Assembly: GCA_977017575.1 (NCBI GenBank)
Contig: CDRNVI010000002.1
Coordinates: forward strand, 558,001 to 622,000
Direction of reading: 5' to 3'
DNA: 64,000 nt
Source: Paramoeba atlantica
Lineage: Eukaryota > Protista > Discosea
Shown: positions 3,079-64,000 of the stretch, one piece after another
How the letters are laid out: each line of letters starts with the position of its first letter
How positions within the stretch are numbered: position 1 is the stretch's first letter
Translations under genes and position numbers: made by a program
Notes under the pieces: model-generated
What the model was told of the DNA's origin: nothing
Seen by the model: only the letters and a program-made list of their open reading frames with translations
Databases searched by the model: none

Positions 3079-3109
<31 letters not shown>
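1367..3109 (+). mobile_element. 5'-truncated CRE-clade element, family A1 (ORF remnant 1367-2585, common 3' UTR, poly(A))
   Basis: GGFGIRS, RWISQSGKG, RHN, RPGDVY, LDFAVT motifs. A20 on the left and A29 on the right. Confidence 0.9.
2597..2819 (+). ncRNA. Conserved structured RNA core of group-A 3' UTRs (exemplar copy; function unknown)
   Basis: Helices 2597-2607/2697-2707, 2621-2630/2660-2668, 2632-2651 (GCGA loop), 2709-2720/2809-2819 and GGUC-GAAA-GACC. Compensatory changes between variants. Confidence 0.7.
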
Positions 3110-3402
3110 CGCGCGAATGGATTGGGTCTGGATTGCTTGTTTTTATTTTTACTGTGTCTTATTTGTCGTATATACTTAGGGGAGATTGAATTGCTAGTTT
3201 TGGGCTGAGAAAAAAGAAAAAGAAAATATACTTCTGTGGAAATGAAAAGAATTGCTAATTTGGTTGCTTGTTTTAAATTCATATACCCCCCTAATGGACC
3301 TACTATGTACTTGGTTCGTCTACTGGGTCAAAATATAGAGGCAATGCCGCGATTCATACTTCTCCCCCCTTATTAATTGCAAAAAAAAAAAAAAAAAAAA
3401 AA
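3110..3402 (+). mobile_element. Tail-only (5'-truncated) group-A copy
   Basis: Distal common 3' UTR plus A22, directly after the previous poly(A). Confidence 0.9.
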
Positions 3403-10806: not shown

Positions 10807-11540
10807 GGCCAAGCTCAGATTCGCAGCCATGGCTGTCGAATCGTATGGATCTTGGTCCCCAAGCGCTATGGCCGTCATTCGAGATTTATCGGTCAACCGG
10901 TCACTCCAATCCGCGAACCTATCCAAAGCAGACGCATTACACGCACTGTTAACTGCCCTGAACATTACCTTGATGAGATCACAAGCGCGAATGATGGTGC
11001 TGCGCTCTCCTCCCACCCCCGATTCAGACCTCGTAGGCTACGGCTCCGAGCTTTGAGAACTACGTGATTCTCGCCCCCCCCCCCATTCACCAGCCTGAAC
11101 CCGTCGGGTGTTGGTCGAGTCGGCAGGACCTATACTCACACCTAGCCCCCGTCGGCTAGGTACCCCAAGTGAGGTAGTGCCCGGGGAGGGGACCCTGCCC
11201 CTCCTCGTCGGCCACCACCTGGTTCTGTGACTGTTCCGCTGCCGGCGTAGGCCCATTGCTTGCGCCCTCTCGTACAACAAGAGCAGGGTTACCAAGGCAA
11301 GCTGGGAGAGGCCGAAAGACCCGGTCCAGAACACGTAAGGAAGGTTTTCCCTGGGCCGACTCCTAGCAAAAGCGCAGGGAGTCCTCAACCTCCCCAATGA
11401 GTTTGGAAGTCGAGTGAGGAAAGCGAAGGGAAGTAAAGGAAAGGAACGAAAAGGAAAAGCAAAGGGAGGTAAAGAAAGGGAGGTAAAGGAAGTGAAAGGA
11501 AAGAAAGAAGTCGTGAAAAAAAAAAAAAAAAAAAAAAAAA

Positions 11541-26010: not shown

Positions 26011-27171
26011 ATGGTCAACACAAGGTCGATGGCCCAGCGTTCACAAAGGTCTTTAACTCCACCTCCGACGGGGCGTGCAGGACGGTACGATCCAGGTCAT
26101 TCTCAGATTCCGATGCCGAGTCCCTATCCTGTAGTAAATCCTTTGCCCGACATGTCACTGCCTGGAGCTAATGTTCAAGAACAGCGAAATGCATCTCATC
26201 AAGAAAGAACCCAACAGACTCAGCAAGAAAGAACGCAGCAGACACAAAGTAATTCGGAACAAAATGGGCCGGCAGCAACCCCCGTAGGTGCACCTTTAGC
26301 ACAGCGCGAGCTTGATCTTTTTGTGCATGTAAAGACTCTTATAGACCAAGGTGCAAGAGTTACTGTGAAGGCTGTTTGGGCTCCATCTACTGGGCCCGTC
26401 GCGCAAAGGCCGTACGCTCCGCAAAATACGGACACAATTATTGGAGTTCTATCGCTTGAAGGTACACAATTGTGGGCCAAATGGACGACGAACCCAAGCC
26501 GGAAGTACCGGTTTCCCCATCGCGATATCTATTACTATGATCTTGTTGTAGAAAATGTGTACTACGAAATGCCAGGGGGTCAGGAAATCGAAGTTGATAA
26601 CGAGGTGGAACGTCGGGGAGATGCGTACAACTTCGATGCAATGGATCCCTTAACATGGAAATTGTGGATGGCGCATGATGGAGATCCGTTGAAATTACGC
26701 GAATTAATTCGTGAACTACGCGACGCGGAAGAATTCGGTTTACGTGATGACCCGCCCAAGTACCGACTACGGATATTTAAGAATCTACTTGTCGAGTGGA
26801 TTTATAATGCGCGAGAGACAGAAGATTGGGATGAGGGACACTGTCTTAAGCTCGGTAAAAACATTTGTGAACTTCTACGAGACATGCATTATCAACGCGA
26901 ACTGAAGGTTGATGTAGAATCGATCCGTTCGAAAATGGAGGCTGAAGAACGTACAGGCGATCGGTTTGCTCAGCTTGCCGAAGATGAGCGTGCAAAACAG
27001 AAGAAAATCAAAGCGAAAACGGGACCAGGTAGCTTCGGAAGGAAAAAGCGTGTGTGCTTTATTTGTCATCAAATTGGACACTTGCAGAAAGATTGTCGCA
27101 GCGCAAAGACGGGGGATTTCGAAAAACGGGTGGACGGCTCTGCCATACAAGGCAGCAAGAGGTCCTACTAG
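26011..27171 (+). CDS. Gag-like protein with C-terminal CCHC zinc knuckle (Y1)
   Basis: CFICHQIGHLQKDC. Colinear with 40368-41771. Confidence 0.85.
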   Translation: MVNTRSMAQRSQRSLTPPPTGRAGRYDPGHSQIPMPSPYPVVNPLPDMSLPGANVQEQRNASHQERTQQTQQERTQQTQSNSEQNGPAATPVGAPLAQRELDLFVHVKTLIDQGARVTVKAVWAPSTGPVAQRPYAPQNTDTIIGVLSLEGTQLWAKWTTNPSRKYRFPHRDIYYYDLVVENVYYEMPGGQEIEVDNEVERRGDAYNFDAMDPLTWKLWMAHDGDPLKLRELIRELRDAEEFGLRDDPPKYRLRIFKNLLVEWIYNARETEDWDEGHCLKLGKNICELLRDMHYQRELKVDVESIRSKMEAEERTGDRFAQLAEDERAKQKKIKAKTGPGSFGRKKRVCFICHQIGHLQKDCRSAKTGDFEKRVDGSAIQGSKRSY

Positions 27172-28414
27172 GGACCCCCACCCGTAACAGCTCGTACTCT
27201 TCGAAAGAAACGAAGGGTGAAAAGTACTCCAGCTTCCGAGACTTTATCGTCCGGATCAGTGAACTCATGTCAAACTACCTCGCAAAAAGCGAAGAAGAGG
27301 AAGATTCGACAAAGTGTTCGAATTGCGGATACTGCGCCCCCTCAGGACCAAATAACGTCAAGGAGGGTGATAACAAACGTTGTAAACGACAGGAAAACCG
27401 CACAAGACAATCTTTTGTGGAGGCTGACCGCGACAAAAAAGTCAGACGCAGCCATAGAAACCTCCCTTCAAACTATGAGAGGAATGTGGGCAACAAGCAC
27501 GTGGGCCACGAGGGGACGCTTGTGGCACCAACTAAACGAGTTTTGTTGCAGGAAAAGCCTAGAGGTGACTCCCTTGTCCGCCGTAGCATACTTGGAAACG
27601 TTGACAATAGCGGTCACAACGAAACTCACATACGCCCGAAACTTGATGGCCATATTCAATGGTCTACAAATGAACACGAATGCGATAAAATTTCGTTGCA
27701 AAACATTGTTATCCGAGGGGGCTGCGGAGCCGATTCATCAAATGAAACCGATAACGCCTCTACTTCTCGCGCAATTGCGAAGCAATCTAACGAGATCCCA
27801 GGACATAGCCGCACTAATATGTTGGAAGGCGGCGTCCCGGTGGACCGAAACGTCAAACTTAGTCAAAGAACAATTTTGCCACGTCACGAGCGCAAGAGTA
27901 GTCATATGGTGGGGACGAAAGACGAAGACGACTCGATTAGACCCGTATCGGGCGTCGATGTACGCTGTGCTGGAGGGGGACGGGACGAGCGAAATAGCGC
28001 AACAAGTTTCAAAGATGAAAAAAGGGGTTCTCCTCTGCAAAACAACCGTGCGCGAAATGGACACAATAATTCGTTCGACTCTCGGGGACGGCTACGGAAC
28101 GCATTCGCTGAAACGAGGGGCGATAACGTATCTATTCGAACAAGTGGCAAGAGGCCTCTTAACCCTGGAAGAAGTGCAACGTCTAGCGAAACATCAAGAA
28201 GCAGAATCGTTGTTCCGATACAACGAGAACCCCTTGACAACAGCTCTTGCACTAGGGACCCAAAAAGCGACACAACTATTACCAATATGATGGGCTATAA
28301 AGACTTCGAATCGTACCTCGATGATTATCCTCTCAAAAAACGTCACACAATAGTGCGACCGCGCCGTTCCTCTAGATTGGCCGGCCCCGACGATCTGAAT
28401 TTACCATTGCATAT
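27121..28414 (+). CDS. -1 frame overlapping the whole YR gene and leading into the RT N-terminus (Y1)
   Basis: Stop-free (ORF 27054-28478). Ends in RRSSRLA..LPLH, as in the Y2 RT. Confidence 0.7.
27172..28290 (+). CDS. Tyrosine recombinase (Y1), in frame with gag after TAG; no early AUG
   Basis: Catalytic set R (AASRW), K (RKTKT), HxxR (HSLKR), H (AKH), Y (FRY). Confidence 0.88.
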   Translation, partial: GPPPVTARTLRKKRRVKSTPASETLSSGSVNSCQTTSQKAKKRKIRQSVRIADTAPPQDQITSRRVITNVVNDRKTAQDNLLWRLTATKKSDAAIETSLQTMRGMWATSTWATRGRLWHQLNEFCCRKSLEVTPLSAVAYLETLTIAVTTKLTYARNLMAIFNGLQMNTNAIKFRCKTLLSEGAAEPIHQMKPITPLLLAQLRSNLTRSQDIAALICWKAASRWTETSNLVKEQFCHVTSARVVIWWGRKTKTTRLDPYRASMYAVLEGDGTSEIAQQVSKMKKGVLLCKTTVREMDTIIRSTLGDGYGTHSLKRGAITYLFEQVARGLLTLEEVQRLAKHQEAESLFRYNENPLTTALALGTQKATQLLPI

Positions 28415-30618
28415 GTTGAATGTTGTTAGGCTTTCTATCCCATTGGGGATGTTGCCTCCCCGGAGTAAGCCGAGGTAGCTTTGGGGGAGGCTATCACTCA
28501 AAGGTGGATTTTCATCCACCTTGTCCGCTGAACTATCTTAACCCTTTCAGGTTGAGACATTCAAATCCAAGGACAGCATGCAAATCCAAGGACTACATAA
28601 GTATGTTCCGCAGGACCGAGAGTGGCCTCCCCCGGAGTAGCCGCCCACTACTGCTTGCTGGCATAGTTCGGGAGCGTTGAGTCTCAGCTTCAACAGTTTA
28701 GACTCCTCAGCTTCAATGGACCAAGTCTTCTAGGGTGTTATACCCCCGAGTGGCCTTGGCTCCTCAGCTTCAACGGGCTAAACTTCGGCTTCAAAGAGCT
28801 CCTATCTCTCCGAATTCTGACCCTAACCCCGTTTTAATGGGTCAGTTGCAAGCCGCAGATGAGCGGTACCCAACCCGAAAAGCGGTATGAAGTTCCCCTT
28901 AGGGGCTCATCTTCAGGGTGCATTTCAGGCCTATCCATTACAGGGTCTAGCGTTCACACAGTTTTAGTTCCTTGAGAATGATTTTTTATTACCTTTGTTT
29001 AACGTTTGGGTTTTCGTGCTCTTTCTATATTCATCTATTATCTTTATCCAACTTTTTTTATTCTGGGCTTTCAGTTTCCATGAGCAATCTGTTGTTATCC
29101 CAACTCTTTCCAGTGCAGCTACAAGGCTTCTACTATAGCATTGCAGGCTTCGTTTATATGTATTTCCTCTATTTTGAGTTGATCGATATTTGCCGAATAA
29201 CACTCTGTTCGGGAATCTATCTGGACCCATTCTTGCGACGTGTCCAGCAAACAGTAAACTTCGGGCATCTATTTGTGGCTGGAGTGGGTCCATTCCTGCG
29301 ATCGATAGGCATTCCTTCTGGGAGGTATATCTTATTGCATCCTTCGCAGATTCTTGGTGCTGTTTATCATTGTATGCGCTATTGTCGTTCTTGACCCATG
29401 GTATGCCGAAAGATGTTTTGATGTATCTTATATAGGCGCGGTTGAGTTTCAGATGCTGGGTTGGTGTAAGCGCCCACGTTGAGCTCGCATATAGTAGAAT
29501 TGGTACTATACAGACTTCCAGGATGAGTCTTTTCGTTTTCCTTGTGATAGCCTTGTCTTTCCACAAGTCTCTAAATTTTCTCATACCTGCGCAAGCTCTT
29601 CTTATTCTGTTTTCTATTTCTTCTTCCAATGAAGCATCTTCACTGATGACTGTTCCAAGGTATGAGAAGTTCCGTACTTGTTCAATAGTTTCTTCTTGTG
29701 CTTTTATCTCGGATGTGTAATACTTTTCTGCTTTGCAAGGTTGAATTACCTGTGTTTTAGTTTTCCTTGTGTTTATCCTTATTCCCCATTGGTTCATAAC
29801 CCCTACTACTGCGTTTAAGGTATTTTGCAGTTCCGTTTGTTCGTCCGACCAAAGAACAAGGTCATCCGCATACGCTATGAGTCCGAAAACATCTGTACCG
29901 GTTACTTTATCGCCTCGTTGAGCTTTTCCTTTTGGGATCCTCCATTCGACACGGATGCCTGCAGTTTTAATCTGTAGTGCTTTCCGGAGTACAGCATCAA
30001 ATGTTGCATTGAATAGCAGGCAGCTCATTCGACAGCCTTGTTTTAAGCCGCCAGGTATTTCGAAGCTTTCACTCTTCGTGCCGTCGTTTAACATGACGCT
30101 TGCAGTTGTTGTGTTATATAGTGCGCGAATTAGTTCCAATAATGGTCCTTCAATTTTCAAACTCTGAAGGGTGGCCCAGACTGCCTCTCGTGGTAAGGTA
30201 TCATAAGCCTTCTCGAGATCCAGGTAGGCAAGATATAACGGTGATTTGTGTCTCCTGACTTCCTCCGTGATTCTTCTGAGTATGAAGATCGCATCGTCTA
30301 TACCTCTATTATGTCGGAAGCCATTTTGGGCTTCTAGAAGTCTAGCATCGACGCGCGCTGCAATACGATGTGTGAGTATGCCAGATAGGACTTTCGCTGC
30401 AGGGCTCATTATTGAAATTGGGCGGTAGGATCCGGGATCGCAGGCTTTGCCTTTTGCTGCGCCTTTGTAGATTGGTATGATGTGGGAGTGCGTCCACTCT
30501 TTGGGAACCTTGGAGTTTTGCCAGCAAAGTTTCAATATCCATGTCATCCAAATAATTGCGGCTTTTCCTGCATATTTGAGATGTTCGGGGAAAATTCCGT
30601 CTGGGCCTTGTGCTTTCC

Positions 30619-30626
<8 letters not shown>
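28415..30626 (-). mobile_element. 5'-truncated RTE-like LINE with ~550-nt structured 3' UTR (its 5' tip continues at 36208-36222)
   Basis: RT ORF and conserved terminal stem. GKNRKAQGPDG is restored when the CRE block 30627-36207 is removed. Confidence 0.88.
28964..30619 (-). pseudogene. RTE-like reverse transcriptase (5'-truncated)
   Basis: KAQGPDG, YRPISI, DLEKAYD, GLKQGCRMS, YADD, FSYLG, FAGHVARM. Confidence 0.92.
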
Positions 30627-30654
<28 letters not shown>

Positions 30655-31010
30655 CTCCTCTTTCTCACCTCTTGACATACTTTTCCCACCTTTCTCCCTA
30701 CTTTCCTGCTTTCCCCTACCCAACTTTTCAACTTTTCAGGGGGGGTAAGGTCTCCCTCAGCTTCGCCTCACCCGGCCTGCAGGCGGCTCCTCAACCATTC
30801 GCGCGTTCCGGACCGGGTCTTTCGACCTCTCCACGGCCTGACTTGTGGACCCTTCCCTTGTTATACGGGAGGGCGCAGGCGCGGGCCTGTGTCGACAGCG
30901 ACACGGTCGCGAAACAGGATGCTGGCCGACGGGGAGGAGATTCACTACCCGTGTACTACCTCACTTGGGGTACCTAGCCTTGACGGACTAGGCGTAGAGG
31001 CCTTTTAGAG
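30627..31010 (-). mobile_element. Tail-only group-A variant (common core + different purine-rich distal end) with poly(A)
   Basis: Core matches 2632-2830 and diverges after GCGCGAATGG. Ends in a long T-run on the plus strand at 30621-30654. Confidence 0.85.
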
Positions 31011-31614
31011 CGTAGAGGCCTTTTATTTTTTTATTTGGGAAGACGTTTTTTTTGCAATTAATAAGGGGGGAGAAGTATGAATCGCGGCATTGCCTCTATA
31101 TTTTGACCCAGTAGACGAACCAAGTACATAGTAGGTCTATTAGGGGGGTATATGAATTTAAAACAAGCAATCAAATTAGCAATTCTTTTCATTTCCACAG
31201 AAGTATATTTTCTTTTGCTTTTTTCTCAGCCCAAAACTAGCAATTCAATCTCCCCTAAGTATATACGACAAATAAGACACAGTAAAAATAAAAACAAGCA
31301 ATCCAGACCCAATCCATTCGCGCGTTCCGGACCGGGTCTTTCGACCACTCCACGGCCTGACTTGTGAACCCTTCCCTTGCTATACGGGAGGGCGCAGGCG
31401 CGGGCCTGTGTCGACAGCGACACGGTCACGAAACAGGATGCTGGCCGACGGGGAGGAGATTCACTACCCGTGTACTACCTCACTTGGGGTACCTAGCCCT
31501 CGCGGGCTAGGCGTGAGTATAGACTCTGTCGACTCGACCAGCATCCCGACCAGCTCTTCATGGGCGCAAACGTGTTCCCGTGCCAAAAGGGGCGCGGTCG
31601 ACGTTTACGAACGT

Positions 31615-34600
31615 TTACACCTCCGTAGGAGAGAGCGGATCCTCAGGAAGTAAACGAGTAACCATCATGCGCGCCTGAAGGCGCATGAGGGTGACGTTCA
31701 GCTCCGTAAAGATTCTGCTCGTGGCTTCCCCTTCTGTCAATAACCCACACGAGGCATGTGAGAGACGTTCCCCAACTTTGCGGATCACTGCTGAAGCACT
31801 GGGGCTCCAGGCGCCATAGCTTTCGACCACCATGGCCGTAAAGTCACACCCGGCGTCAACGGCTTCCCGGCGCTGCCTACCCTTCTCCATGGAGGAATAA
31901 TGCTCGGCAAACGACCCCGCGGTTACCCAGCTAGCGTTCCGGACTTTGTCCGTATATTTTAGTTGCTGAGCATGGGTGACCGCGAAGTCAAGCACGATGG
32001 GATTCCCCAAGAAAAGACTGCGCAGGTATACGTCGCCAGGTCTGGTGAGGGCCCCCCCTGGGCCTCTGTTGCCAAGACTTTTCTCCCGTTGTGGGGACAG
32101 TTTGGCTCTGCTGCAAAGGTCCGTGAACTGATCTGCCACGGCATTGTGCCTCGCGATAATTCCGTTGTCGTGCTTGCAAGACAATGCGTGGTCCCCTTTT
32201 GTGTCGAGTGGAAGAGGGCATTTCGGCATAGGACACTTCCCTTCTTCAGGGTAAACATCGATCCCTAACCACCAACGGGCCAAGGTTCGAAATGCTGTAG
32301 GGGTAAAGGAATACCCCATGTCCTTAGACGGGGTTACAAAAGCCCAGCTGCTTGCCCCTTTACCGCACTGAGATATCCATCGTGCTCGTGTCCGCACATC
32401 TGACATTTCGTATGATTGGGAGAAATCGTGGGCCGCGATCGCGTAGCTGATGTCTCGCTGGCGAGGGATCTTCCCTTTCAACCATTGCGGGGGGGTCGTA
32501 TCAGCACAATCCTCCGAGGCGTACAGCGGTGTAGAAAAGTGTATTTCCTCAGGTGTATGCATGGTGCGGGAAGTTATGCGCAGGGGTAGGCAGATCTCCG
32601 AGGGAGGCTGATCGATGACACCTAGGGGGCGTTTCCTCTTTCTATGGGAGAAAGGGCTGCCAACTGCTTTTTCGCAAGGGGCGTTCGGCGCTGTGAGGAT
32701 ACGGCCTCGCGAGTCAAGTAAAGATATTCCGGCCTTCTTGTTGATATCCCTGACAGCTTCCGCGAATCCATCTGCGTCAGTGGGGTTCCATGAGTCTCTG
32801 GCCGCACAGAAAGCGACGGAAGATACGTAGGCGGCCGTGGCATGCAACGCTGCGGACCTTAATCCAAAACCGCCGTGCCGCTTCAAACGCTGTACCTGAG
32901 ATCGCGCGTGGCGATCCAGGGGGCAAATTATTGCTTCGGTAGCAGTCATAAGAAAGCCGTCGAGTCGGGTGCATAGATGGGTTATGGCTTGGGGCGGTGT
33001 ACTTCTCAGAGCGTACACCATCTTGCAAAACCCAGCACACTGTCTGATAAGGGCAAGTGCGACCTGTGGGTCCCGGATGGTGGCTATCGCGTCAAGCGTG
33101 TCCTCCGCGGGGCCTATGGCATGTGTCTCGAGGTACTCTGAGCAATGTTCTGGCGATCCCACCGGGCTCCCAAGGATGTCGAAATTGCCGTGGACATTGA
33201 TCTTATTGGAGGGGATATCTGGAAATTCGGAGGCGTGGTGTGCCGATGCCGGGGGTGTAACGATCTCACATTTAGACATGTTAAGATGTAAACCCCATTG
33301 TGGACCTACTCGGGCAATCGTGTCGAGGGCGTTCCTAACGTCTTGCGCTTGTCCAATGAGGACGCCGTCATCGAGGTACCATAACTGGGCAAAGAGGTTA
33401 GCCTGAAGAGCAATTGCTTCTGCGAGCGCTAAGGACACTAGCGAGAAGAGTAGCGGTCCTAAAGGGTCGCCCTGTTGCACTCCCTCTTCAGAAGAAAGTG
33501 ATCGGAGTCCATAGGTGAGGGAGCTGGGGTTCGAGTAACACCAGCTTATCCATGGGAATAGCTCTGGGAAGTGCTCTTGGACTAGAGGAAGAAAACAAGT
33601 CCTGCTCACGTTGTTGAAAACGTTCCGTAGGTCAACTTTGCAGAGTACAAAGTTGGAGCAGTCCATGTTTGATGAGATGGCCAAGCGGCACATGTGGATA
33701 ATGCGTTCATTCCCAGCTGGGGTAGCCACACCAAATTGCCGTCCTGCAAAAAGAGTTCTAGCCTTGGACCTGACTGCGTTGCATGCAGCCTTGCTCACTA
33801 ACCGTCGCAAAGTTTCCCCGGCGGCAATTGGGCGAACGTCGTTTTCACCTTTCTCTAGGGCACACAGTCGGGCTCCCGCAAAGTGACTCTGTACTTCCTT
33901 TGGTGCTTTTCCTGCGAGGAGATGATTAGCGAGCTTCGTAAGGGATTCGAGTGGGTCTGTGTTCTTGCCTCCGTGGGTAAGGAGCGCTGCCTGTAAATGC
34001 TCGGGGCGTAATCCCAAGGTACCCGCGGAGGAGCCTCTGTGAAAGCCCTTGATTGCCTTCGCGATTTCAGATTCATCCAACTCCAGGGGCTCTGCTGCGG
34101 GGAAAAAGTTGGCGGCCCCCGGAACGAGCAAACGGCAGGGGTGCTTTTCTTGTAATTTAGAGAATGTGTCGTCGTCGTCCGGAGCCATGGGGTCTGACGT
34201 TAGAGCAGCCATGCCTCTGGAATATTCTCCCTGTCGAGCAAGGAGTTCTGCCCTTAGTGCTGCTTTTTCATCTTCATCACTATCCTCGGTAGGAGTTACT
34301 TTCTTTTTGCGGTAGTTCGTCGTGGCCTCTTGCCATAGGGAGGAATAATCCAACGCAAGCCAACGCTGCATGCAACTGTAGGCGTGGGAAGCGTAAGCCA
34401 TGTGACCTTTGCGTCCTCCACGGCGCGGGGCGGGAAGGACACATTTAGGCAACATGGCCAACAAGGTCCATGACTGCAGCGTATTTTCTTTGACGGCGTT
34501 ATCCATGGCCTCTGTAAGAATTTCGCCCCACAACTGGCGGCATCGATGCGGTACGTCTTTGCACGTACTAAGGGGTAGTGAGCAGATATTGGATAAAGAT

Positions 34601-35607
34601 GGAAGCTCGAGCTGCGTGGTTCCATCCACCAGGGTGGGGCTGTCTTCCTCAGAAAGGGTTTCGGCGTGAGGTTCGGGTAGTGAGGAGGCCTTTGTTGCTT
34701 GGCAGCTATGAGAGTGAGATGAACGCTTGCTTTTATCATAGTTACGCCCGCAAGAGGAACATACGAAGCGACCCTCCCCCTCCCACCACTCTGCAGGAAT
34801 GCTGCTTCCATGCCGGCAAGCGACGTGGTTATAGAAAGCTTGCCACGACCCGCCATGCGGTAAGCTCCGCCATGAGCATCCCTGGGCTGGGCACTCTCGA
34901 GCGTCGACCCTATTGCAGGGTAGGGGTGTATCTTGTGAGCTGGTGGGGCCATGTTCCAGTTGTTTTTGACTCACTTCCGCTGAGTCAACGTCTTCTTCAC
35001 ACCTGTTAGCTGGGAACGTTCCTTGTTGCTGCGACAGCGGGAAATAAGGGGGAGTTTGTTCGTGAACGGCGGTCCCAGCGGATGGATCGAGCTCCATTGC
35101 AGGAGAATCTCCTCTATCGCATGGGTCCTTGTCGTGTGCCCTAAGGTCCGACGCTTCGCCTCTAATGGGCGTGGTTTTCTCTCGCGTCTTGGTGGTTTTT
35201 ATGATGCCTCGAATATGTCCTTTAGCGCAGGGAGGTATAGTGGTTACTCGACGTCGAGAGAACTTCCTTGCGACAGAATCCTTTTCAGACTGTGGTGATT
35301 GGGTGTTGTGATCTGGGCCGATAAGCACACGAGAGTGATTTGATTCTTCATCGCTGCCATCTTCGCGTCCTGTATCAGGCGTCGGTTTTTCGTGGGAAAT
35401 CAAAGCAGCATTTTTGCACCAGTCATGAGGAATATTCGCAGGTATAGGAGTTGTGTATAGTAGTTCATTGTAGGTACTCGGCTGTTTAATGAGATGCGCA
35501 TTACCCGCGAACTGGTCCCAGGATCCTGTTTTATGAGTCGCCTCCTAATGCAAAAACGAATCGTCATCCATAGGAGATGGCTCTTCAAAGTGGTCTTCGC
35601 CTGACAT
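31615..35607 (-). pseudogene. CRE A5 polyprotein; ATG at 35607, premature TAG at 35545-35547, otherwise open
   Basis: N-terminus MSGED..PMDDDSFL..WDQFAGNAHLI matches A3 and A4. Zinc-finger, RT and RLE motifs intact. Confidence 0.9.
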
Positions 35608-35653
35608 AGAACGAACCGCGTACCTGAAAAAGGATGAAATATAGAAAATAATT

Positions 35654-35689
35654 CAACAAGGTACAGAAACTGTATCTTTATCGTTAAAG
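35654..35689 (-). other. SL exon-like sequence at 5' end of CRE A5
   Basis: Reverse complement identical to 12940-12975. Confidence 0.8.
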
Positions 35690-35692
35690 ACG

Positions 35693-36165
35693 TTTTTTTT
35701 TTTTTTTTTTTTGCAGTTAATAAGGGGGGAGAAGTATGAATCGCGGCATTGCCTCTATATTTTGACCCAGTAGACGAACCAAGTAGGTCCATTGGGGGGG
35801 AATACGAGTTGAAAACAAGTAAATTTTTTTTTTTATATGATTTTAAAACAAGCAATCAAATTAGCAATTTCATATTTTGGAGCCCAAAACTAGCAATTCG
35901 ATCTCCCGTAAGTATAAGAACATTAAAAACAATAACAATAAAAACAAGCAATATATGCCCAATCCATTCGCGCGTTCCGGACCGGGTCTTTCGACCTCTC
36001 CACGGCCTGACTTGTGAACCCTTCCCTTGTTATATGGGAGGGCGCAGGCGCGGGCCTGTGTCGACAGCGACACGGTCGCGAAACAGGATGCTGGCCGACG
36101 GGGAGGAAGTTTTAGTTCCCGACCCATGTCCTACCTCACTTGGAGTACCTAGCCCTTGAGGGCGA
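35693..36165 (-). mobile_element. Tail-only group-A variant copy
   Basis: Common core with a variant hairpin (GGGAA/TTCCT), common distal end, poly(A). Confidence 0.85.
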
Positions 36166-36222
36166 TATTTTTTTATTTTTTTATTTTTTTTTTTTTTTTT
36201 TTTTTTTTTTCCTATTTTTTCC

Positions 36223-37754
36223 TACCATTGCATATAAAGCCTGACATTCCCCGAATAGATCTTGAAAAAGTTCGAAAATGGATGAACCCAGCGACTTTGT
36301 ACCGTTTCGAAGAGGTCTGGGATATGTTGACTAAGCTCCCGGAGGGGACAACGAAAACTGGTCGGGTGAGCGGGGGGCTTGCGAATGAGGATGTTCGCGC
36401 TCTTGTTGAACATGGAATTATTTCCCGCGTCGGGGAAAATGAATTGGTGGACCGTCCAACGATGCAAGAGATTATTCCCTTTTCAGTAGTTGAACGCACA
36501 GATGATGGAGAATCCCAGAGGCGAAGATTCATAGCTTGGACGCGAGTCGACAATATGTCGTTAAAAGAATATGAGCCGTACGTGCCTCTCTCACATCCAG
36601 CGTATTATCTACATAATGTAAGCTCTTCATTCGCAGTCAAACGTGACCTGGCGTGTAGTTTCTTTCAGATTGGACTACCCCTCGAGTCACGCGCAAAGTT
36701 TCGGTTCTCCCATGAGGGAGAAATGTACGAAATGACAGTAATGCCTATGGGTCACAGATGCGCGCCCGAAATTATGCACACAGTGACCGCCACTATAGCG
36801 GGTCATTCCCACTATTGCAAGCAATCACATGGCTTTACTTCGTCAGCCATTGATGTATATATTGATGGCGTTCGGTTCGCAGGCTCTTTCAATGCTGTAC
36901 AACATTACGAGAACTTTATCGATCAAAGGGCAAAAAGCATAAGCGCGAAATTCAAATCCGCAGAAGGTTATCCACTGACGAAATATGTTTATAACGGCGT
37001 GCTTTACGACCATCAAGCGCATAAGGTCGCACTTGGACCGAAGGTGTTGTCTAAAATAGAGGCGAACCATTTTGGAATACTGACGTACAGTGATCTTGAA
37101 GCCTGTGTTGGCCGTTTTATCTACTCGTCCGCGATATTAGGAATGAACCTCCCCCGCTTTCACAATATTTTACGGATCACGCGACGCCGCATAAACGAGC
37201 TGAATCGCTACCCTTTATTGGCGGATGTTGCTGTGCCATTATCCAAGGTTACTAGGTGTGGTCTAGCAAAATGGAGAGACGAGTTACGAGCTAATATACC
37301 CGTTGCTCCTCAACCTCGACCGGATACAGTCGTTCACCAACATGTTTTGTACACCGATGCCTCCAAGGTTGGATGGGGAGGGGTGTTGTACACGGACTAT
37401 GGAGAAATGATCTGTGTCGGCGGTAAGTGGGATGCATCGTTTGACTATGAAGTCAATCGGGCAGAAACTCGTGCCGTTTATCTTAGTATTGAAAAATTAA
37501 AACACCACTTTCGGGAAGGGACGTGTCTAGATTTATATGTAGACAACGTTTCGTGCATGGCAGCCGTCAATAGGAAAATATCGAAATCTTCCGGCGTTTC
37601 TGACGAACTTGAAAAGGTTTTGAATGTAATTAAAAAGCAAGGAATTGCCGTAGATGCGCGGTACGTGAGCACGAAAAGTAACCCTGCGGACAAAATCAGC
37701 CGACTTCGTTATGCCGAGGCAGACCCTGATAATGCGAAAGGGGTGGAAAGTTAG
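36223..37754 (+). CDS. RT/RNase H of Y1 (3' portion)
   Basis: KRDLACSFFQI, PMGHRCAP, YIDG. RNase H: YTDAS, NRAE, YVDN, NPAD. Confidence 0.9.
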
Positions 37755-37770: not shown

Positions 37771-37961
37771 GCGCCGGCCAGGCGCGATGCCCTATCGTAT
37801 AGTTTTGATTTAGGTAGTTTATATTATAGGTCGACAAAACGAATGTTGATATCATTCTATTCTGCAACTATATGTTTTGATAGTTATTGTAAACCTTACC
37901 CTGAATGGGCGTATACTTTATATAGGATCTCTACAAAGTACGATATTCACACAAAATGAAA
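37771..37961 (+). repeat. Split direct repeat B1 (B2 at 38200-38390)
   Basis: 191-bp sequence, apparently identical in both copies. Confidence 0.92.
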
Positions 37962-38390
37962 TTCTAAGAGTTTACGAAAAGAATTTTAGGAAGTGTGCAG
38001 TGGTTAACGTGTTTCATGCACGCACCAACCAGTGCAATCTTGAATACATCTTTAGCATATACTGCACTTTTACGCATAAACTTTACGTGTAATGTACTTT
38101 TGTTTCGTTATTTCATATAATATTTCTTAGAAGAAGATTCTTAGGACAATATTTTCTTCACTTTACTTCGATAATTTTTGCGCCCACCCACCGGCCCCCG
38201 CGCCGGCCAGGCGCGATGCCCTATCGTATAGTTTTGATTTAGGTAGTTTATATTATAGGTCGACAAAACGAATGTTGATATCATTCTATTCTGCAACTAT
38301 ATGTTTTGATAGTTATTGTAAACCTTACCCTGAATGGGCGTATACTTTATATAGGATCTCTACAAAGTACGATATTCACACAAAATGAAA

Positions 38391-40189
38391 TTCGAGGAAT
38401 AATTGGTGATTATAAGGAATGCAATTATGATGAGAAAAATCTTATATGGAATCGCGCCTTATCAGCCGTTAAGTACTCACTCACAACCGTCCAGATAGCC
38501 GAGGCCAGACGCAGACGGCGACGTCCACTGAAAGAAAACCTTGAATCGACCACATCGCCTCAACAAGAAATCGACAAACGAGCAATTAAAAAAGCTATTC
38601 GATTAGTGCTGGAAGGTGCAGTCTCAAAAGCCACTAAAGTACTAGACAGGAAAATCAAGCCAAATACTCTATCCGACGAAGAAATTTTCTCCCAGCTTAA
38701 AACATTGCATCCGGATGGCCCGATTACATTTCAGTTGCCTCATGATGCACCCCAAATCGCATGCATTACAACCGAGGAGCTCCGTTCTGCAGGACGTCGT
38801 TTGGCAAAGGGGGCAGCACCAGGCCCCACAGGACTGACCGACGGCATCATTCGTCTACTGTTAGATGATGAAGTCTGTTGCATAAACTTAAGCCACATGC
38901 TTCTCGATTTAATCAATGGGTGTCTGTCCAAACAGCTCATGACACGCCTGCGACGCGCTCGACTTGTTGCCCTCCCCAAAGCCGAAGGTCGCGTACGGCC
39001 TATTGCGATGGGAGAAATCCTCCTAAAGCTTGCTGGCCTTGTTCTGCTGCAACGCAACGAAGGGACTCTAGAAAGTCTCTTCAAGCCAATGCAACACGGC
39101 GTAATGATGAACGGAGGATGTGAACAAGTGGTCCATAAACTACACGCTTTGTACAATGACGGACATGCAATTCTTTCTCTGGATGTCAAGAATGCCTTTA
39201 ACGTCCCCACCCGCGACGACATTGCGAAAGCAATGTTTGCCTTCCACACGATGAAACCATTCCAAAGACTGTTTCACACCGAATATTCAGAGAGCTCGGA
39301 GTTGTTATTCTACGGTTCAAGTGGCAACCTCCATGGAATGGTTAATAGCACAGCAGGGGTCCGACAGGGTTCATCGTTATCCACGTTATACTTCTGTACG
39401 TTTTTCCAGCCATTGCTGGAAACGATGGCACATGAGTTTCCCGAACTATATATCTACGCATACATCGATGACGTAAATTTTGCTTCTAAAGATCCTGCGC
39501 TCATTAGCACGGCTTTCCAGCGGTTTAAGGTACTTCTTCAGGAGAAAAGAATAGAGCTGTCATGCCAAAAATGCGTTTGGTTCACCGGGAAGAATGACAT
39601 CGCAATGCCTGATACTCTAGAGTGTCAAGGCACTTCAACAGAAGCTAAAGCCGCTAAATTTCTCGGTGCCTTTGTTGGGGAGAATCAATCCGTGAGTTCG
39701 AAATTAGTTCAACAACTCGAAAAACATGACACCATTTTCCGGAGGCTGGAGGCCATGGGCGCTAATAATATTTCACTACGGTTACTATCGAAAAGCGTTA
39801 ATGTAAGGCAAAATTACCACATAAGGGTGCACCCCCCACAAGCCTCCCTTGACCTGACCAGAAATTTTGACGAAAAGGTTAACAGCGTATTACAGTCATG
39901 GTTTGGCAACCTAACTGCCGAGCAAATTTTATGGATGCGGCTGCCACTAAAGAAAGGTGGCTTAGGCCTGAGTCCAACAGAACCCTTTCGCCAAACGGCA
40001 TACGAGACCTCTAAAAGCATCTCTCTTGAGCATTTTAATCTTAATTCAGCTCGGGAGTGCTTACTAGCGGCCCCTAAACCCGTCGGCGAGAATTCGATTA
40101 CGGACTCTAAGGCCAACACTGCATTATACCACGAAAACATTCGTACACGTCTCATGTTGAACCCAAAGACGGTGTCTGCCATCCTGTCC
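38391..40189 (+). pseudogene. RT region of SLACS-like B1
   Basis: APGPTG, RPIAMGE, LDVKNAFN, GVRQGSSLS, YIDD, KGGLGL. Confidence 0.9.
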
Positions 40190-40367
40190 TAATAGTCCAC
40201 GTTTTGAAATTTACCCGAGGGGCTGTTATGTATTTGCCTGCTGGCCCTTCGGGGCACATAATTTCTTCAAATTATGATTTGTGTTCTATAATTACATGGA
40301 TTGGATATTCTACTATTTCTTATATATCCTTGTTAGGTTGTTAGTCGTACTACGTTTAAGTTTTTGT

Positions 40368-41771
40368 ATGAGATCCCAACGATTGCGGGCTCCGTCGGAG
40401 CCACGACAGGAGCGCGATAGATCACCGAAGCGGAATAGGGCGCCGACACCCATTCAGACCTCCTCTTTCCAAGACCATTCCAAGCGTCAGTCCCTTTCGT
40501 GCCCTCCCGTGCGCCCCCCTCTCCCTCCTCTCCCCACGCAGCCGGCTCCGCAGGTATCCGCGCGACCTCCTCCGATTCCCCCTACTCCTGTCCCAGCGCG
40601 CCGAAAGGTACGCCCTTCTGGTAGAGCGCTCAGCCCCGCCCGCGAACCGCCTAGCCCTCTCCCTTCCAACCTTCCCAGTTTGCCTGCGAGCTCCCTCCCT
40701 AGCCCGTACCCATTTCCGCTGGAGGCTCCCGAGCCCCATATGCGACGAAGAGGAACCCTTAACCCTGACCAGGTTGAGGCTTCTCGCTCGCCGCGCCGTT
40801 ACGAGGCCCTTGACATTGACCACGTCGAGTTGCCTCAGCGTTCACGCTGTGATGCGCGTGGGATCATGACACAATCCAGCAAAGAAGAGTTCATCACGAA
40901 AGTAATTGAGCTTCTGCGCAAGGACTATGAGGTCACCGTCGAGGCTGTATGGTCCCTTCCCCGTGACGGCCTACGGCAGACGGTTATAGGGTTGGTGCAT
41001 ATGACGCATCCTAAGGACCCTAACTCAACTGAGTTGTTCGCCGAGTGGGATGGGGACAAGAACACTGCCTACCGTTTTCCCCATCCCGAGATCAACTACC
41101 ACTCTTTGGAACTGGCCCATGTTCGGGCGCAGATGCCGGGTGGGAAACCAGTTGAAGATCTGATCCCCACTTTTGAACGCGTCCGTATTACGGACCCGAA
41201 AGGCTTCTCCCCCTACGATCCGGTTACTTGGCAACCGTGGATCGACACGGATGATTTGTTCAAGCCACGTGAACTCATCCGTGAGCTGCGCGAATCTCCG
41301 CAGCTTGGGGTACGCTTCAACCCGCCGCCGCAGCGTGAGCGCCTGTTTAAAATGTTAACTGAATGGGTGTACGCTGCGTGTAATACGGAGGGATGGCTAG
41401 AGAAGCACAACCTCGCCGTAGCCCTTCTCATCATCGAAGAGCTTCGCAACCATTATTGGGCTGCGGCGGGCGTTGCTGTCGAGCGTGTGCAACAGCGTTT
41501 GCACCGTGACGACGACCCTCAGGACCGCTATGGTCAGCTTGTTGTGGACGAGCAACTGAGGGGCCGAACCGCTCAGCGTGCTCCCCGCCGACGAACCCAG
41601 GCGCCATATTGCTTCGCGTGCCACCAGTCTGGCCACTTCCGCTCAAACTGTCCCCAATCATCTCAACACCAAGGGGGACAGTTCCGCAGCCAACGAACCC
41701 CAGCCCAGGATTTTCGAGGCGGGGTGGTGGGCGGCGCCAACCGTTACGGCGCAACACGGGCTTTCCACTAG
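40368..41771 (+). CDS. Gag-like protein with CCHC knuckle (Y2); start codon uncertain
   Basis: CFACHQSGHFRSNC. VTVEAVW..YRFPH..DPVTW..RELIRELR shared with Y1 gag. Confidence 0.85.
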   Translation: MRSQRLRAPSEPRQERDRSPKRNRAPTPIQTSSFQDHSKRQSLSCPPVRPPLPPLPTQPAPQVSARPPPIPPTPVPARRKVRPSGRALSPAREPPSPLPSNLPSLPASSLPSPYPFPLEAPEPHMRRRGTLNPDQVEASRSPRRYEALDIDHVELPQRSRCDARGIMTQSSKEEFITKVIELLRKDYEVTVEAVWSLPRDGLRQTVIGLVHMTHPKDPNSTELFAEWDGDKNTAYRFPHPEINYHSLELAHVRAQMPGGKPVEDLIPTFERVRITDPKGFSPYDPVTWQPWIDTDDLFKPRELIRELRESPQLGVRFNPPPQRERLFKMLTEWVYAACNTEGWLEKHNLAVALLIIEELRNHYWAAAGVAVERVQQRLHRDDDPQDRYGQLVVDEQLRGRTAQRAPRRRTQAPYCFACHQSGHFRSNCPQSSQHQGGQFRSQRTPAQDFRGGVVGGANRYGATRAFH

Positions 41772-44644
41772 GAAATGCCCCCCACCCCAATTACTGCTCG
41801 TGCCCGTCGTCCCAGGCGACGACGGGTGGATATTCTTACCCCTGTTTCCTCCCCGTCTCTCCTCCAGCGCGAAAGACGGCCACGCGTGCGTGGCACTACT
41901 CCTCCTCCCCGCCCTCTCTCCCCGTTACGTCTAAGGCGCAGAAGCGTCTCCCTCCCAATCCGTCCTCTACCCCGGCTTCCCGTTCCCGTTTACGCCGCCG
42001 CCAAGACCGCCGCCGCCAAAACCGCCGCCGTCGTAACCGCCGACGCCGCACAGCCGCCAGGGAGACGCCGCCAGGAGTTGCTGAGGGCGATTCTTCGAAT
42101 GCCCCCCGAGGACCCGCGCGCCACCCAGATGAACGAGGCGCTCCAGCCCATGTGGGCGACGGCCACGTGGGCCACAAGGGAGCGATTGTGGTTCCGCCTG
42201 CGCGAGTATTGCCAGGCGAAGGGAATCACCGCGAATCCTGCAAACGCGGTGCTCTTCCTAGAGACTCTGCCTCTCGCTACCTCGACGCGCATGGGGTACG
42301 CAGGGGCATTGAGGACTCTGTTCGAGCTCATGGGAATCGAAGGTACCCCATTGAGTCTCTACGTAAAGGCCCTGCAGGCGCAGGGGGGGCTAGAACCCAC
42401 GCGGCAGATGCTACCAATCACGCCACTTCTTCTAAAGAAGCTGAGACGTCACCTCGACGTAAAGGAGAGCATGTGTTGCCTCCTGTGTTGGAAAGCCGCT
42501 GCGAGATGGACCGAGACCGCCGACCTGAGGCGGGAGCAGTTTGTGAGTGTGGCCAGTCACGAGGTAGTCATTTATTGGGGCAGGGGGACAAAGACGACTC
42601 GTCTGAATCCTTACCGACCGTACCTCTACGCGATAGTGACTGGCCCGGGGACACCCGAACTGGCTCAGTTTGTGGGAAGTTTGAGACCAGGCCAACGCCT
42701 GTGTTACACGACGGTCCGGGAGATGGACCACAGGATAAATCAGCTTCTCGGTCCGGGGTATGGAACGCATTCCATAAAAAGAGGGGCAATAACTTGCCTG
42801 TTTCACGAGATCTCCCTCGGGAATCTCAGGATGGAGGACGTCCAGAACCTCACGAAACACCTCAACGTCGAATCACTGCTGCGCTACAACGCAAGCAGTA
42901 TTACAACGGCAAGGGCTCTCGGGACGCAGAGAGTCTCAGCACGTCTCCCAGTGCTGTAACCTCGGAGCACGTGGCAAAGTGCTTCGAGGAAGTGCCTTAC
43001 CTTCGCAGGCACTCCGTTGTTTGTGCACGCCGCTCTTCACGGCTAGCCAAGGCACACGACGCTCACCTACCTTTGCACGTTAAGAAGTCGATACCTGTTA
43101 TCCATATGGATCAGGTTAAAGAGTGGATGAGTCTGTCAGCTGCCACTCGTTTTCGCAAGGTAGTGGATGAATTATTATGGGTACCTAAAGCCCCGTACCC
43201 CGAACCTAGTGTGAAAGGTTCGTTGCCTGAGGCGGACGTCCGATTGTTGGAGGACGCAGGCATAATCTCTAAGGTCCCGGCGCAGGAGTTGAGAAAGCGC
43301 CCATCGGTGCAGTTCATGATTCCCTTCACGGTTGTGGAGACCGATGATGAGGGCAATCAGCGCAGAAGATTTATTTCATGGACAAGGGACGATAACGATA
43401 GATTAAAATCATATGAACCAAAGGTCCCATTATATCATCCCTCCAAGTATCTTCATAAGGCGCACGAGCCGATGGCTGTGAAGCGGGACTTCACATGCGG
43501 GTTTTACCAGATTGGTATCCCGAAGAGGGCGCGGCCCAAATTCCGCCTTAGAACGAACAGTGGAGACGTGTATGAGATGAACGTCCTCCCGATGGGCCAT
43601 AGGTGTGCACCGGAGGTTATGCACACGGTTACCGCCGCGATTGCTGGCGAGGCGTCGATTTGTTCTCAGCGCTACTCGTTTCACCGAGGCGCTATCGACG
43701 TTTATGTTGACGGAGTTCGGTTTGCAGGAACCCACTCCGAGGCCACCACGTACGCTCAGTTCATTGACGAGCGTTGCGACAAGGCGAACGGTCTTTTCAA
43801 AGATCGGGGTCAGCCCCCTGTAGCACAGTACGTGTTCAATGGGGTGGCGTTCGACCATAACGCGCATACGGTCTGCCTGGGACCGCGAGTGATCAGGAAA
43901 CTGCGAGCCGACTCTTTCTTCAACATTTCCTTTGTTGACCTAGAGGCGGTGGTGGGGCGCCTCATTTATGGCTCCGCAGTTCTCCGACTCAATATGCCGC
44001 GGTTTTATTTCGCTTTGAAGGTGGCGCAACGGCGTATCAACTTGTTGAACCGTTGCCCGAAGTTATGTGACCGTCCGGTCGCACTCCCTGTCGTCACTCG
44101 CTCCATGCTAGCAGAGTGGAGAAACGAGTTGTTGGAGAATGTTCCACGGTCTCCACCTCCCCATCCCGATGTTGTTCCACACAAGCATCGTCTCTACACC
44201 GATGCCTCGGTGAAAGGATGGGGAGCGATTATGTATTTAGACAGCGGAGAGGTTTTGATTACGGGAGAGGCGTGGCCTGAGTCCTCCTCGTATGAGGTGA
44301 ATCGTGCGGAAGCTGCAGCAGTCCGCTTAGCCCTCGAGAAGTTTTCCGCGCATTGCCCCCGTGGAACCTGCTTGGATGTTTTTGTTGACAACACCTCCTG
44401 TCAGGCTGCACTGAACAGGAGGATCTCCAAGTCAGAGGGGGTTTCAATGGAATTGCGCGAAGTCCTGCGACTGACAGAGGAGAAAGGTATTTGTGTCAAG
44501 GCAGCGTATATATCCACGGATGAGAACCCGGCGGATGCTGTCAGTCGCGGGAAGGAGATTGAGATGGAGAAGGTCGAGAGATACGAAGGTAAGATCGAGA
44601 GAGACATTAGTAAGGTAGGCAGTCATATTCAGAGAAAGCCCTAA
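41715..44644 (+). CDS. -1 frame ORF: YR-overlapping linker + RT/RNase H (Y2)
   Basis: Stop-free 41609-44644. KRDFTCGFYQI, PMGHRCAP, YVDG, YTDAS, NRAE, FVDN, NPAD. Confidence 0.88.
41775..42959 (+). CDS. Tyrosine recombinase (Y2)
   Basis: AAARW, RGTKT, HSIKR, TKH, LRY. Confidence 0.9.
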   Translation: MPPTPITARARRPRRRRVDILTPVSSPSLLQRERRPRVRGTTPPPRPLSPLRLRRRSVSLPIRPLPRLPVPVYAAAKTAAAKTAAVVTADAAQPPGRRRQELLRAILRMPPEDPRATQMNEALQPMWATATWATRERLWFRLREYCQAKGITANPANAVLFLETLPLATSTRMGYAGALRTLFELMGIEGTPLSLYVKALQAQGGLEPTRQMLPITPLLLKKLRRHLDVKESMCCLLCWKAAARWTETADLRREQFVSVASHEVVIYWGRGTKTTRLNPYRPYLYAIVTGPGTPELAQFVGSLRPGQRLCYTTVREMDHRINQLLGPGYGTHSIKRGAITCLFHEISLGNLRMEDVQNLTKHLNVESLLRYNASSITTARALGTQRVSARLPVL

Positions 44645-63446: not shown

Positions 63447-63625
63447 GAAATTTAGGAGACTTTATTTTGTTGATATTGCAGATGGTGCCCCGAAAGGGGT
63501 CTAAACTGTTTTCAAATTCTACCCCGAAATGGGTCTAAACTATTTATCTATGTACCAGGGATAGATTGAGGTAATTATAAATATACTGTATATTAGTGAC
63601 ATTTCCTCCTATAAACAACAAAAAC

Positions 63626-64000
63626 GTAGAACCAACCCGCCAAATGGAGCCCGCGACCCCATGGCATATCAGAAAGTTGCGCGCCAAACTCATACCAAGG
63701 GATTCGATAGCGGTGTTGATCTGTTGGAAAGCCGCGGGCCGATGGACCGAGGTAGCCGAATTGACCAAAGACCGGTTTGTCAAGGTGGACGACAACGAAG
63801 TAATTGTGTATTGGGGGCGGCAAACGAAAACCAGACGACTCAACCCGTATCGGTTATCCATGTGCACAACGATAGTGGTTCCAGGGACTCCAGAGATAGC
63901 TCAACACGTCAGGCATATGATTGCAGGGCAGCGCATAAGCGCCACGACAGTACGGGAGATGGATCTCCGAATACGCAAGATTCTGGGCCCGAAATTCGGA
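63626..64000 (+). pseudogene. Tyrosine recombinase fragment of a third YR element (Y3); runs off right edge
   Basis: VEPTRQMEPATP..CWKAAGRW..YWGRQTKT..NPYR..TTVREMD. Not in the supplied ORF track; translated by hand. Confidence 0.88.

Follow-up and report, generated by a model that had tools for sequence, protein, structure and literature searches.

A candidate -1 frameshift signal at the end of gag in VIPER-like tyrosine-recombinase retrotransposons, with a stop-free linker frame overprinting the recombinase gene

We analyzed a 64-kb window of DNA (positions 558,001 to 622,000 of contig CDRNVI010000002.1, assembly GCA_977017575.1, deposited as Paramoeba atlantica) that contains three copies of tyrosine-recombinase (YR) retrotransposons, here called Y1, Y2 and Y3; coordinates below are those of the window. 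The gene set consists of a gag-like open reading frame (ORF), a YR, plus a reverse transcriptase/RNase H (RT/RH), without a methyltransferase, and the elements are VIPER-like tyrosine-recombinase retrotransposons. In Y1 and Y2 the RT/RH lies in the -1 frame relative to gag, and this frame is free of stop codons from the end of gag across the whole recombinase gene. Both points had been put forward in a preliminary description of the window and were borne out by frame maps of the two elements; the stop-free frame also holds in about ten families of related copies. From comparative sequence evidence, it is likely that these elements produce their RT/RH through programmed -1 ribosomal frameshifting close to where gag ends. 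The signal is very probably a frameshift cassette of the gag-pol type in an unusual form, as judged from sequence, with an RNA junction that encloses the gag stop codon and a 390-codon linker that overprints the YR.

Several hundred YR matches, at 43-100% identity, occur in the 45.7-Mb genome, and its YR copies number roughly 500. The copies examined were 22 oriented elements from about ten families, with YRs 50-100% identical to that of Y2; families nearer to Y1 were covered through genome motif-pattern matches, and two Diplonema loci (L053 and L054) lay outside the comparison. In every family gag and YR share one frame, and a single TAG divides them wherever the junction is intact, the exceptions being a TGG in place of the stop (L032), an additional TGA (L042) and two degenerate junctions (L036 and L044). 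In the families of this genome, gag stops at UAG, followed by G and a purine. The opening of the -1 frame lies 97-262 nt ahead of this stop, always upstream of the slippery heptamer described below, and in most of the 22 copies the frame spans the YR and continues into the RT/RH as an ORF of 836-1045 codons.

The distribution of stop codons differs sharply between frames. Y1 has 23 stops in the -1 frame over gag and none over 27033-28476, and about 36 in the +1 frame over the YR. Y2 has 31 in the -1 frame up to 41507, with the next one only at 44642, and 22 in the +1 frame within the YR. In the Y3 fragment the YR frame and the -1 frame are both open, and the +1 frame has nine stops; the open -1 frame reported earlier for Y3 is thus present (63565-64000), while its given start needs correction, as the YR frame begins at the ATG at 63644 and position 63643 belongs to the -1 frame. 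Over the copies examined, the +1 frame contains 12-36 stops within the YR and the -1 frame over gag contains 6-29. Several copies are shortened by a stop in the -1 frame. Such stops in other intact copies were to count against frameshifting in the preliminary description; they are absent from the intact families, and the stops fall inside the YR in four copies (L031, L032, L037 and L040).

To quantify the avoidance of stops, the YR was shuffled among synonymous codons so that protein and codon usage were preserved. These shuffles predict 10-13 stops in the -1 frame, while none was observed in 10/10 family representatives, and no shuffle was free of -1 stops in any of the 10 representatives (0/2000). 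This rules out chance and composition as the cause of the open frame, in agreement with the earlier rough estimate that its openness exceeds chance, and the -1 frame over the YR is under selection against stop codons. In the Y2 family, where many copies are 94-100% identical to one another, 30/30 copies keep the -1 frame open over the YR. A conserved start codon for the -1 frame was not found among the ten families: ATGs in this frame are few and differ in position between families, and in the Y2 family, the most abundant one, there is none between -259 and +737 relative to the TAG (332 codons).

We then considered what the -1 frame encodes where it overlies the YR. Between families, the YR catalytic region shows pairwise amino-acid identities of 61% for the YR frame, 27% for the -1 frame and 28% for the non-coding +1 frame. 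Hydrophobic residues make up 16-21% of the -1 product over the YR and 31-36% of YR and RT. In an AlphaFold2 prediction from an alignment of nine full -1 ORFs, residues 1-480 have a confidence (pLDDT) of 20-25 and lack secondary structure. Helices begin at residue 485, precisely where the YR finishes, and lead into an RT/RH fold with values mostly of 60-90. The lack of conservation, the scarcity of hydrophobic residues and the predicted disorder indicate a stop-free linker laid over a real gene rather than two proteins. Judged by sequence comparison, the -1 product over the YR is unconstrained save for the absence of stops and is not a second protein, so that the term "dual coding" used in the preliminary description was too strong; the model suggests that it is probably a disordered linker.

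A heptamer occurs at the same site in every family when sequences are aligned on the gag stop, and reads G_GAU_UUU, G_GAU_UUC, G_GUU_UUC, G_GUU_UUU or G_AUU_UUU. The two heptamers originally noticed in Y1 and Y2 (Table 1) both lie in the gag frame, as stated then. The consensus is N_NNU_UUY, and a check of conservation over the genome copies found no variation in the A-site part, U_UUY, among the families examined here. The P-site codon (GAU, GUU or AUU) is non-canonical for the X_XXY_YYZ pattern. The residue ahead of the Phe is D, V or I (G in a distant relative), and its codon ends in U in every case. Within their codon families, the elements use GAT at 52%, GTT at 36%, ATT at 44% and GGT at 23%; multiplying these frequencies over about 11 lineages gives a rough estimate of ~1e-4 for the chance of a U-ending codon throughout. 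That the residue varies and the codon nevertheless keeps its final U points to selection on the nucleotides U_UUY.

An RNA structure starts 5-6 nt past the heptamer with GGGGUGG, whose complement CCACCCC lies 6-9 nt past the TAG. The structure is a three-way junction, in which P1 is an invariant outer helix, P2 a hairpin of variable sequence, and P3 a hairpin with the gag UAG in and beside its apical loop. The hairpin described earlier for Y1 and Y2 was correct in its inner stems (CTGCC/GGCAG in Y1 and GCGCC/GGCGC in Y2), which correspond to P2. Its outer stem, GGTGG with CC(T)ACT, is not a conserved pairing, the true partner being the CCACCC beyond the TAG; instead of a hairpin whose 3' arm runs into the gag stop, there is a three-way junction that closes past it.

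The same three-way junction was recovered in 11/11 representatives by independent minimum-free-energy folds, with energies of -31 to -51 kcal/mol. The Y1 fold has an energy of -30.9 kcal/mol (z -4.7) and the Y2 fold -36 kcal/mol (z -1.9), and two further representatives gave z-scores of -3.3 and -3.0. RNAalifold predicted 21 pairs, and compensatory double changes occur in 9 of these. Counted over the alignment, pairing holds in 92% of cells and drops to 42-54% if the partners are shifted by 1-3 columns, and 0/500 shuffles matched the observed covariation. P1 is kept as nucleotides despite a differing codon phase, its arms encoding R-V-D and P-P-P in Y1 and G-V-A and P-T-P in other families. 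At the genome scale, the pattern GGGTGG-N33-63-TAGG-N4-12-CCACCC occurs 125 times, versus 3 times for a reversed control, and the matches bring up further covarying variants of the junction. In the Y2 family, 28/30 copies retain the heptamer, both P1 arms and the TAG. A three-way junction is thus conserved at the point of entry into the -1 frame.

The same arrangement can be followed into more distant elements. Two loci from other assemblies, L051 and L052, show about 30-37% identity in YR and RT, L052 being at about 35%. Their frame plan is the same, and their gag stop is TGA. L052 carries the canonical G_GGU_UUU, and L051 carries G_GAU_UUC, each followed by 6 nt and a G-run. Since the folds of these loci are no better than those of shuffled sequences, only the heptamer and the G-run are claimed for them. 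The L051 contig contains tandem elements (453-2930 and 8577-10877), with a 360-residue ORF between them on the minus strand (7342-8424).

Heptamers in published trypanosomatid VIPER copies were also checked, by reading the cassettes of Trypanosoma cruzi and Crithidia fasciculata by eye from supplement 10 of PMC6681497, and canonical sites were found at the homologous place in both. In T. cruzi Dm28c VIPER, the CCHC knuckle is followed by TCA AAA AAC (A_AAA_AAC) and, after a spacer of 6 nt, by a 9-bp stem, GGGGCUGCC/GGCAGCCCC, with the gag UGA and the YR AUG in its loop; downstream, the -1 frame remains open and the +1 frame does not. In C. fasciculata VIPER, CAA AAA AAA (A_AAA_AAA) is followed by 6 nt and a GC-rich hairpin with the UGA in its loop, the YR lies in the gag frame and the RT in the -1 frame. 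PMC5146736 places ORF1 of the T. cruzi VIPER consensus at 169-1509, YR at 1510-2517 and RT/RH at 1386-4214, so that, as in the present elements, the RT/RH ORF begins within the 3' end of gag, in the -1 frame, and overlaps all of the YR. The frames calculated from these coordinates match the frame plan found here.

Based on these observations, we propose the following model. The majority of ribosomes would translate gag and terminate at the UAG. A fraction would pause at N_NNU_UUY with the Phe codon UUY in the A site, where the three-way junction lying 5-6 nt downstream and closing just past the gag stop would block them, and would slip back by one base. The slipped ribosomes would then read about 390 codons of the -1 frame over the recombinase gene, as a disordered stop-free linker, before reaching the conserved RT/RH domains, and the product would be a Gag-linker-RT/RH fusion. 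In Y2 the peptide predicted at the shift junction is ...AQDF followed by SRRGGGRR. A transframe fusion of this kind, joined through a long linker encoded over the recombinase, was suggested in the preliminary description and is supported by the comparative data. It is the sole reading that accounts for all of them, given the open -1 frame, the lack of an early ATG, the slip site with its covarying RNA and the canonical sites in published VIPERs.

Several points weigh against this model. Re-pairing in the P site after the slip would be poor in most families (GAU to GGA, AUU to GAU), and we know of no proof that G_AUU_UUU acts as a shift site. For L051 and L052, the minimum-free-energy fold differs from the expected structure, whose stability does not exceed that of shuffled sequences. 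The elements lack a protease domain that could release the RT from a fusion. In five of the ten families a -1-frame ATG lies within about 10 nt of the YR stop, and in these families the RT could start independently. Some Bodo saltans copies may have a differing frame plan, judging from ORF tables in the supplement of PMC6681497; the tabulated lengths are not multiples of 3 for some species, and for this reason the tables were not used for frames. A search for RNA-seq runs of this organism found none, and the sequencing runs that bear the element yielded DNA-like contigs without informative joints. We infer the slippage, its frequency and the fusion as the functional form of the RT from comparative evidence only.

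The expression of the YR bears on the same junction. An ATG two codons past the TAG is found in the Y2 and L033 families only, others having ACG, TTG, GTG, GCG or nothing. All families keep frame 0 open between the gag stop and the YR core, and seven of them do so although the first in-frame YR ATG lies 33-101 codons downstream, for which the per-family chance is 0.005-0.29. In the Y2-related copy L032, a TGG (2195-2197) replaces the gag TAG and produces a continuous gag-YR ORF of 866 residues, and in Bodo saltans TATE copies a single ORF holds gag, YR and RT. The open frame 0 without an ATG, the constant UAG with its following G and purine, the TGG of L032 and the single ORF of B. saltans suggest read-through of the UAG or initiation directly after it, and it is plausible from these sequences that one or the other makes the YR. 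We therefore raise the possibility, tentatively, that one junction serves two recoding events, with a -1 shift leading to Gag-linker-RT/RH and UAG read-through or non-AUG reinitiation leading to Gag-YR or YR. If true, three products would be made from one message. An alternative downstream hairpin, in which CCACCC would pair with a later GGGTG, might drive read-through, but it was found in 3/10 families only and was not adopted.

It is unlikely that the RT/RH is instead translated independently, with the open -1 frame as a by-product, whether through termination-reinitiation at an AUG on or close to the YR stop or from a trans-spliced subgenomic mRNA. The families with a -1-frame ATG overlapping the YR stop or about 10 nt from it are Y1, L041, L038, L047 and L043, and in Y1 (28287-28290) and L041 the ATG and the stop overlap as ATGA. 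The conserved sequence of the RT ORF and its predicted fold begin at the YR stop, and some T. cruzi copies have alternative, shorter ORF3 starts according to PMC5146736. However, the Y2, L033, L039 and L046 families keep the conserved post-YR segment without an ATG there, and a separate start leaves the absence of -1 stops over about 390 codons in every family unexplained. It also fails to explain why the frame opens ahead of the gag stop, beside a conserved slip site and structure, and frameshifting is preferred for this reason. In the five families that carry the ATG, reinitiation at the YR stop is possible as an additional route to RT.

A role of the junction in something else, such as gag-stop read-through or reinitiation for the YR, RNA packaging or dimerization, with little or no frameshifting, is quite improbable. 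Structure near a stop codon is typical of read-through signals, the gag stop always lies in the P3 loop, and frame 0 is open and free of ATG from the stop to the YR core in seven families. Read-through stimulators, however, are normally located 3' of the stop, whereas most of the structure here is 5' of it. Such a role leaves the open -1 frame and the conservation of U_UUY unexplained, and it and frameshifting are not mutually exclusive.

A change of frame in the RNA itself, through transcriptional slippage or through editing at a run of T or A, would fit the run of eight A at the C. fasciculata site, and kinetoplastids are known for editing by U insertion and deletion, in mitochondria only. 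We consider it very improbable for these elements, as the runs in this genome are just T4-T5, too short for efficient polymerase slippage, and a structure at a conserved spacing of 5-6 nt is a hallmark of ribosomal slippage. The contigs of four sequencing runs, which are DNA-like, show no insertion or deletion variants at the site. Lastly, GC-rich sequence has fewer stops in general (Y2 is 57% GC), but an open -1 frame arising as an artefact of composition or chance is refuted by the shuffles, which were never stop-free, and by the stop counts in the +1 frame of the same DNA and in the -1 frame over gag, and the pattern holds in the more AT-rich Y1 and in 10 families.

The signal proposed here resembles those of retroviral gag-pol and gag-pro (U_UUU_UUA in human immunodeficiency virus type 1, A_AAU_UUA in Rous sarcoma virus, A_AAA_AAC in mouse mammary tumour virus) and that of the L-A totivirus (G_GGU_UUA) in that the heptamer lies shortly ahead of the gag stop. 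It shares with these a spacer of 5-9 nt, a stable downstream RNA structure and a pol in the -1 frame. In the retroviral and L-A systems pol is a Gag fusion made at a fixed ratio, and the Gag-linker-RT/RH fusion would be its counterpart here. As with the Gag-Pol of L-A, there is no protease to cut the fusion, and the T. cruzi VIPER copy uses the same A_AAA_AAC as mouse mammary tumour virus. Unlike in retroviruses and L-A, ribosomes would have to cross about 390 codons over a complete 0-frame YR gene before the RT, and the stimulator would be a three-way junction with the gag stop in a hairpin loop. The elements further differ from retroviruses in having a euglenozoan host and in integration by a tyrosine recombinase, not an integrase.

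Two of the heptamers found here are also identical to viral shift sites, where perfect re-pairing after the slip is limited to the A-site tRNA-Phe. G_GUU_UUU is an established site of cardioviruses and of arterivirus nsp2TF, and G_GAU_UUU is the shift site of the dianthovirus red clover necrotic mosaic virus (RCNMV). In cardioviruses and arteriviruses the sites depend on a trans-acting protein and have a longer spacer, whereas the spacer here is 5-6 nt and is followed by RNA structure. G_GAU_UUU is also the established site of an umbravirus, pea enation mosaic virus 2 (PEMV2), with a stop codon close by (PMC5009743). Unlike the case proposed here, those of RCNMV, PEMV2, the cardioviruses and the arteriviruses are replicase or accessory-protein shifts.

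Among retrotransposons, the present elements share with trypanosomatid VIPER the order of a gag-like ORF with a CCHC knuckle, YR and RT/RH, the YR in the gag frame, the lack of a methyltransferase, and the motifs MWA.STW in the YR and RRS..LA...LPLH where the RT ORF starts. They differ in that RT and YR are only distantly related in sequence, in heptamers of the form U_UUY rather than A_AAA_AAN, and in a three-helix junction in place of a single long stem. DIRS1-like elements are likewise YR retrotransposons with extensive overlap of the pol and YR frames, as described in PMC3266345. There, pol precedes or overlaps the N-terminus of the YR, and the catalytic domain of the YR lies in the non-overlapping 3' part; here, by contrast, the whole YR, catalytic core included, is overlapped by the pre-RT linker.

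An overlap of YR and RT in VIPER and TATE is stated in PMC5146736 (Ludwig and Krieger 2016), PMC6681497 (Ribeiro 2019) and PMC12278014, and PMC3266345 describes VIPER as usually without overlaps. In the searchable text of the papers that report the overlap, "frameshift" refers to mutations only. We found no proposal of frameshifting for VIPER, DIRS, Ngaro, tyrosine-recombinase or kinetoplastid elements, though the original VIPER paper (Lorenzi 2006) may mention one. The mechanism, which the preliminary description did not know to have been described for VIPER/TATE-like elements, was not found described in these searches either; the YR/RT overlap itself was already published.

The coordinates of the elements in the window are collected in Table 1.

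Table 1. Features of the three YR retrotransposon copies in the 64-kb window.
Feature	Positions	Strand	Remarks
Y1 gag-like ORF	26011-27171	+	zf-CCHC at residues 347-363; ends in TAG at 27169-27171
Y1 -1 frame, stop-free	27033-28414	+	Last 139 nt of gag, all of YR (linker) and first conserved residues of the RT ORF
Y1 heptamer G_GAU_UUC	27114-27120	+	In gag frame
Y1 three-way junction	27126-27185	+	P1 27126-27133/27178-27185; P2 27140-27144/27151-27155; P3 27161-27166/27171-27176
Y1 YR reading frame	27172-28290	+	In gag frame; first in-frame ATG 306 nt past TAG
Nested insertion(s) in Y1	28415-36235		Span includes second copy of the target-site duplication
Y1 RT/RH remainder	36236-37754	+	Same -1 frame; 52% identity to Y2 RT
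Y2 gag-like ORF	40371-41771	+	From first ATG; CCHC knuckle; ends in TAG at 41769-41771
Y2 -1-frame ORF	41510-44644	+	1045 codons; linker at residues 1-480, RT/RNase H at ~485-1020
Y2 heptamer G_GAU_UUU	41708-41714	+	In gag frame; kept in 28/30 Y2-family copies
Y2 three-way junction	41721-41788	+	P1 41721-41733/41776-41788; P2 41734-41738/41748-41752; P3 41762-41766/41771-41775
Y2 YR ORF	41775-42959	+	In gag frame; ATG two codons past gag TAG
Y3 C-terminal YR fragment	63565-64000	+	YR frame from ATG at 63644; at window edge

Y1 is divided by a nested insertion of 7.8 kb, flanked by a 13-bp target-site duplication, TACCATTGCATAT, at 28402-28414 and 36223-36235. Position 28414, where the candidate cassette had originally been taken to end, is therefore a genuine break in Y1 and not the end of the element, as the RT/RH resumes beyond the insertion with its frame unchanged. 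A long T-run adjoins the right junction of the insertion. Directly past the stop of the Y1 RT/RH, a pair of 199-nt direct repeats with 99% identity (37771-37969 and 38200-38398) is probably part of the split direct repeats of Y1; with the settings used, a 5' partner near the Y1 gag was not detected, nor were any repeats around Y2. An ORF of 628 codons (38306-40192) is located between the 3' repeats of Y1 and the gag of Y2. Contigs with other Y2-family copies diverge upstream of ~40361-40367, about 10 nt short of the gag ATG at 40371.

The identities of the encoded proteins were assigned largely from profiles. Single-sequence searches of the PDB with YR and RT returned no match, and Pfam gave weak matches only, to the CCHC knuckle in the gag-like ORFs of Y1 and Y2 and to RNase H (PF17917) in the RT/RH ORF, which ends past the RNase H; profile searches were therefore needed for YR and RT. 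A YR profile built from ten YRs of this genome and two distant relatives matches phage integrases weakly (E 0.004), and the alignment contains invariant R, K, H, K, H and Y positions. At the site of the second catalytic Arg (H-x-x-R, for example 42770-42790), the motif is H-S-I-K-R-G-A with an invariant Lys; the residue after this Lys is Arg in this genome and His in the two distant loci. A profile search with the C-terminal part of the -1 ORF found the viral "enzymatic polyprotein" entry 8r0s, which we take to be a caulimovirus-type polyprotein, together with the Ty3 and human immunodeficiency virus RTs. In a protein search with the RT, the only named matches were Diplonema proteins, at 28% identity, and no named trypanosomatid protein was among them. 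A possible relationship to trypanosomatid VIPER proteins was judged by eye, from short motifs shared with published copies.

Taken together, the data have consequences for how such elements are annotated and interpreted. The gag and RT/RH would be joined through the shift site, rather than ORF3 being annotated from an arbitrary ATG. The elements offer a natural example of a frame kept open for about 1.1 kb over a functional gene while the sequence it encodes is unconstrained, and gene finders and "dual-coding" statistics would miscall such a frame. If the junction does serve two recoding events, the 390-codon linker would be one of few clear examples of an overprinted frame on which selection acts solely to keep out stops. 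To our knowledge, no -1 frameshift signal has been described for tyrosine-recombinase retrotransposons or for nuclear translation in Euglenozoa, and this one would be the first. The complete YR/RT overlap of VIPER and TATE would be explained as the footprint of a retrovirus-like Gag-Pol frameshift, with a concrete signal that elements of the human parasite T. cruzi carry as well.

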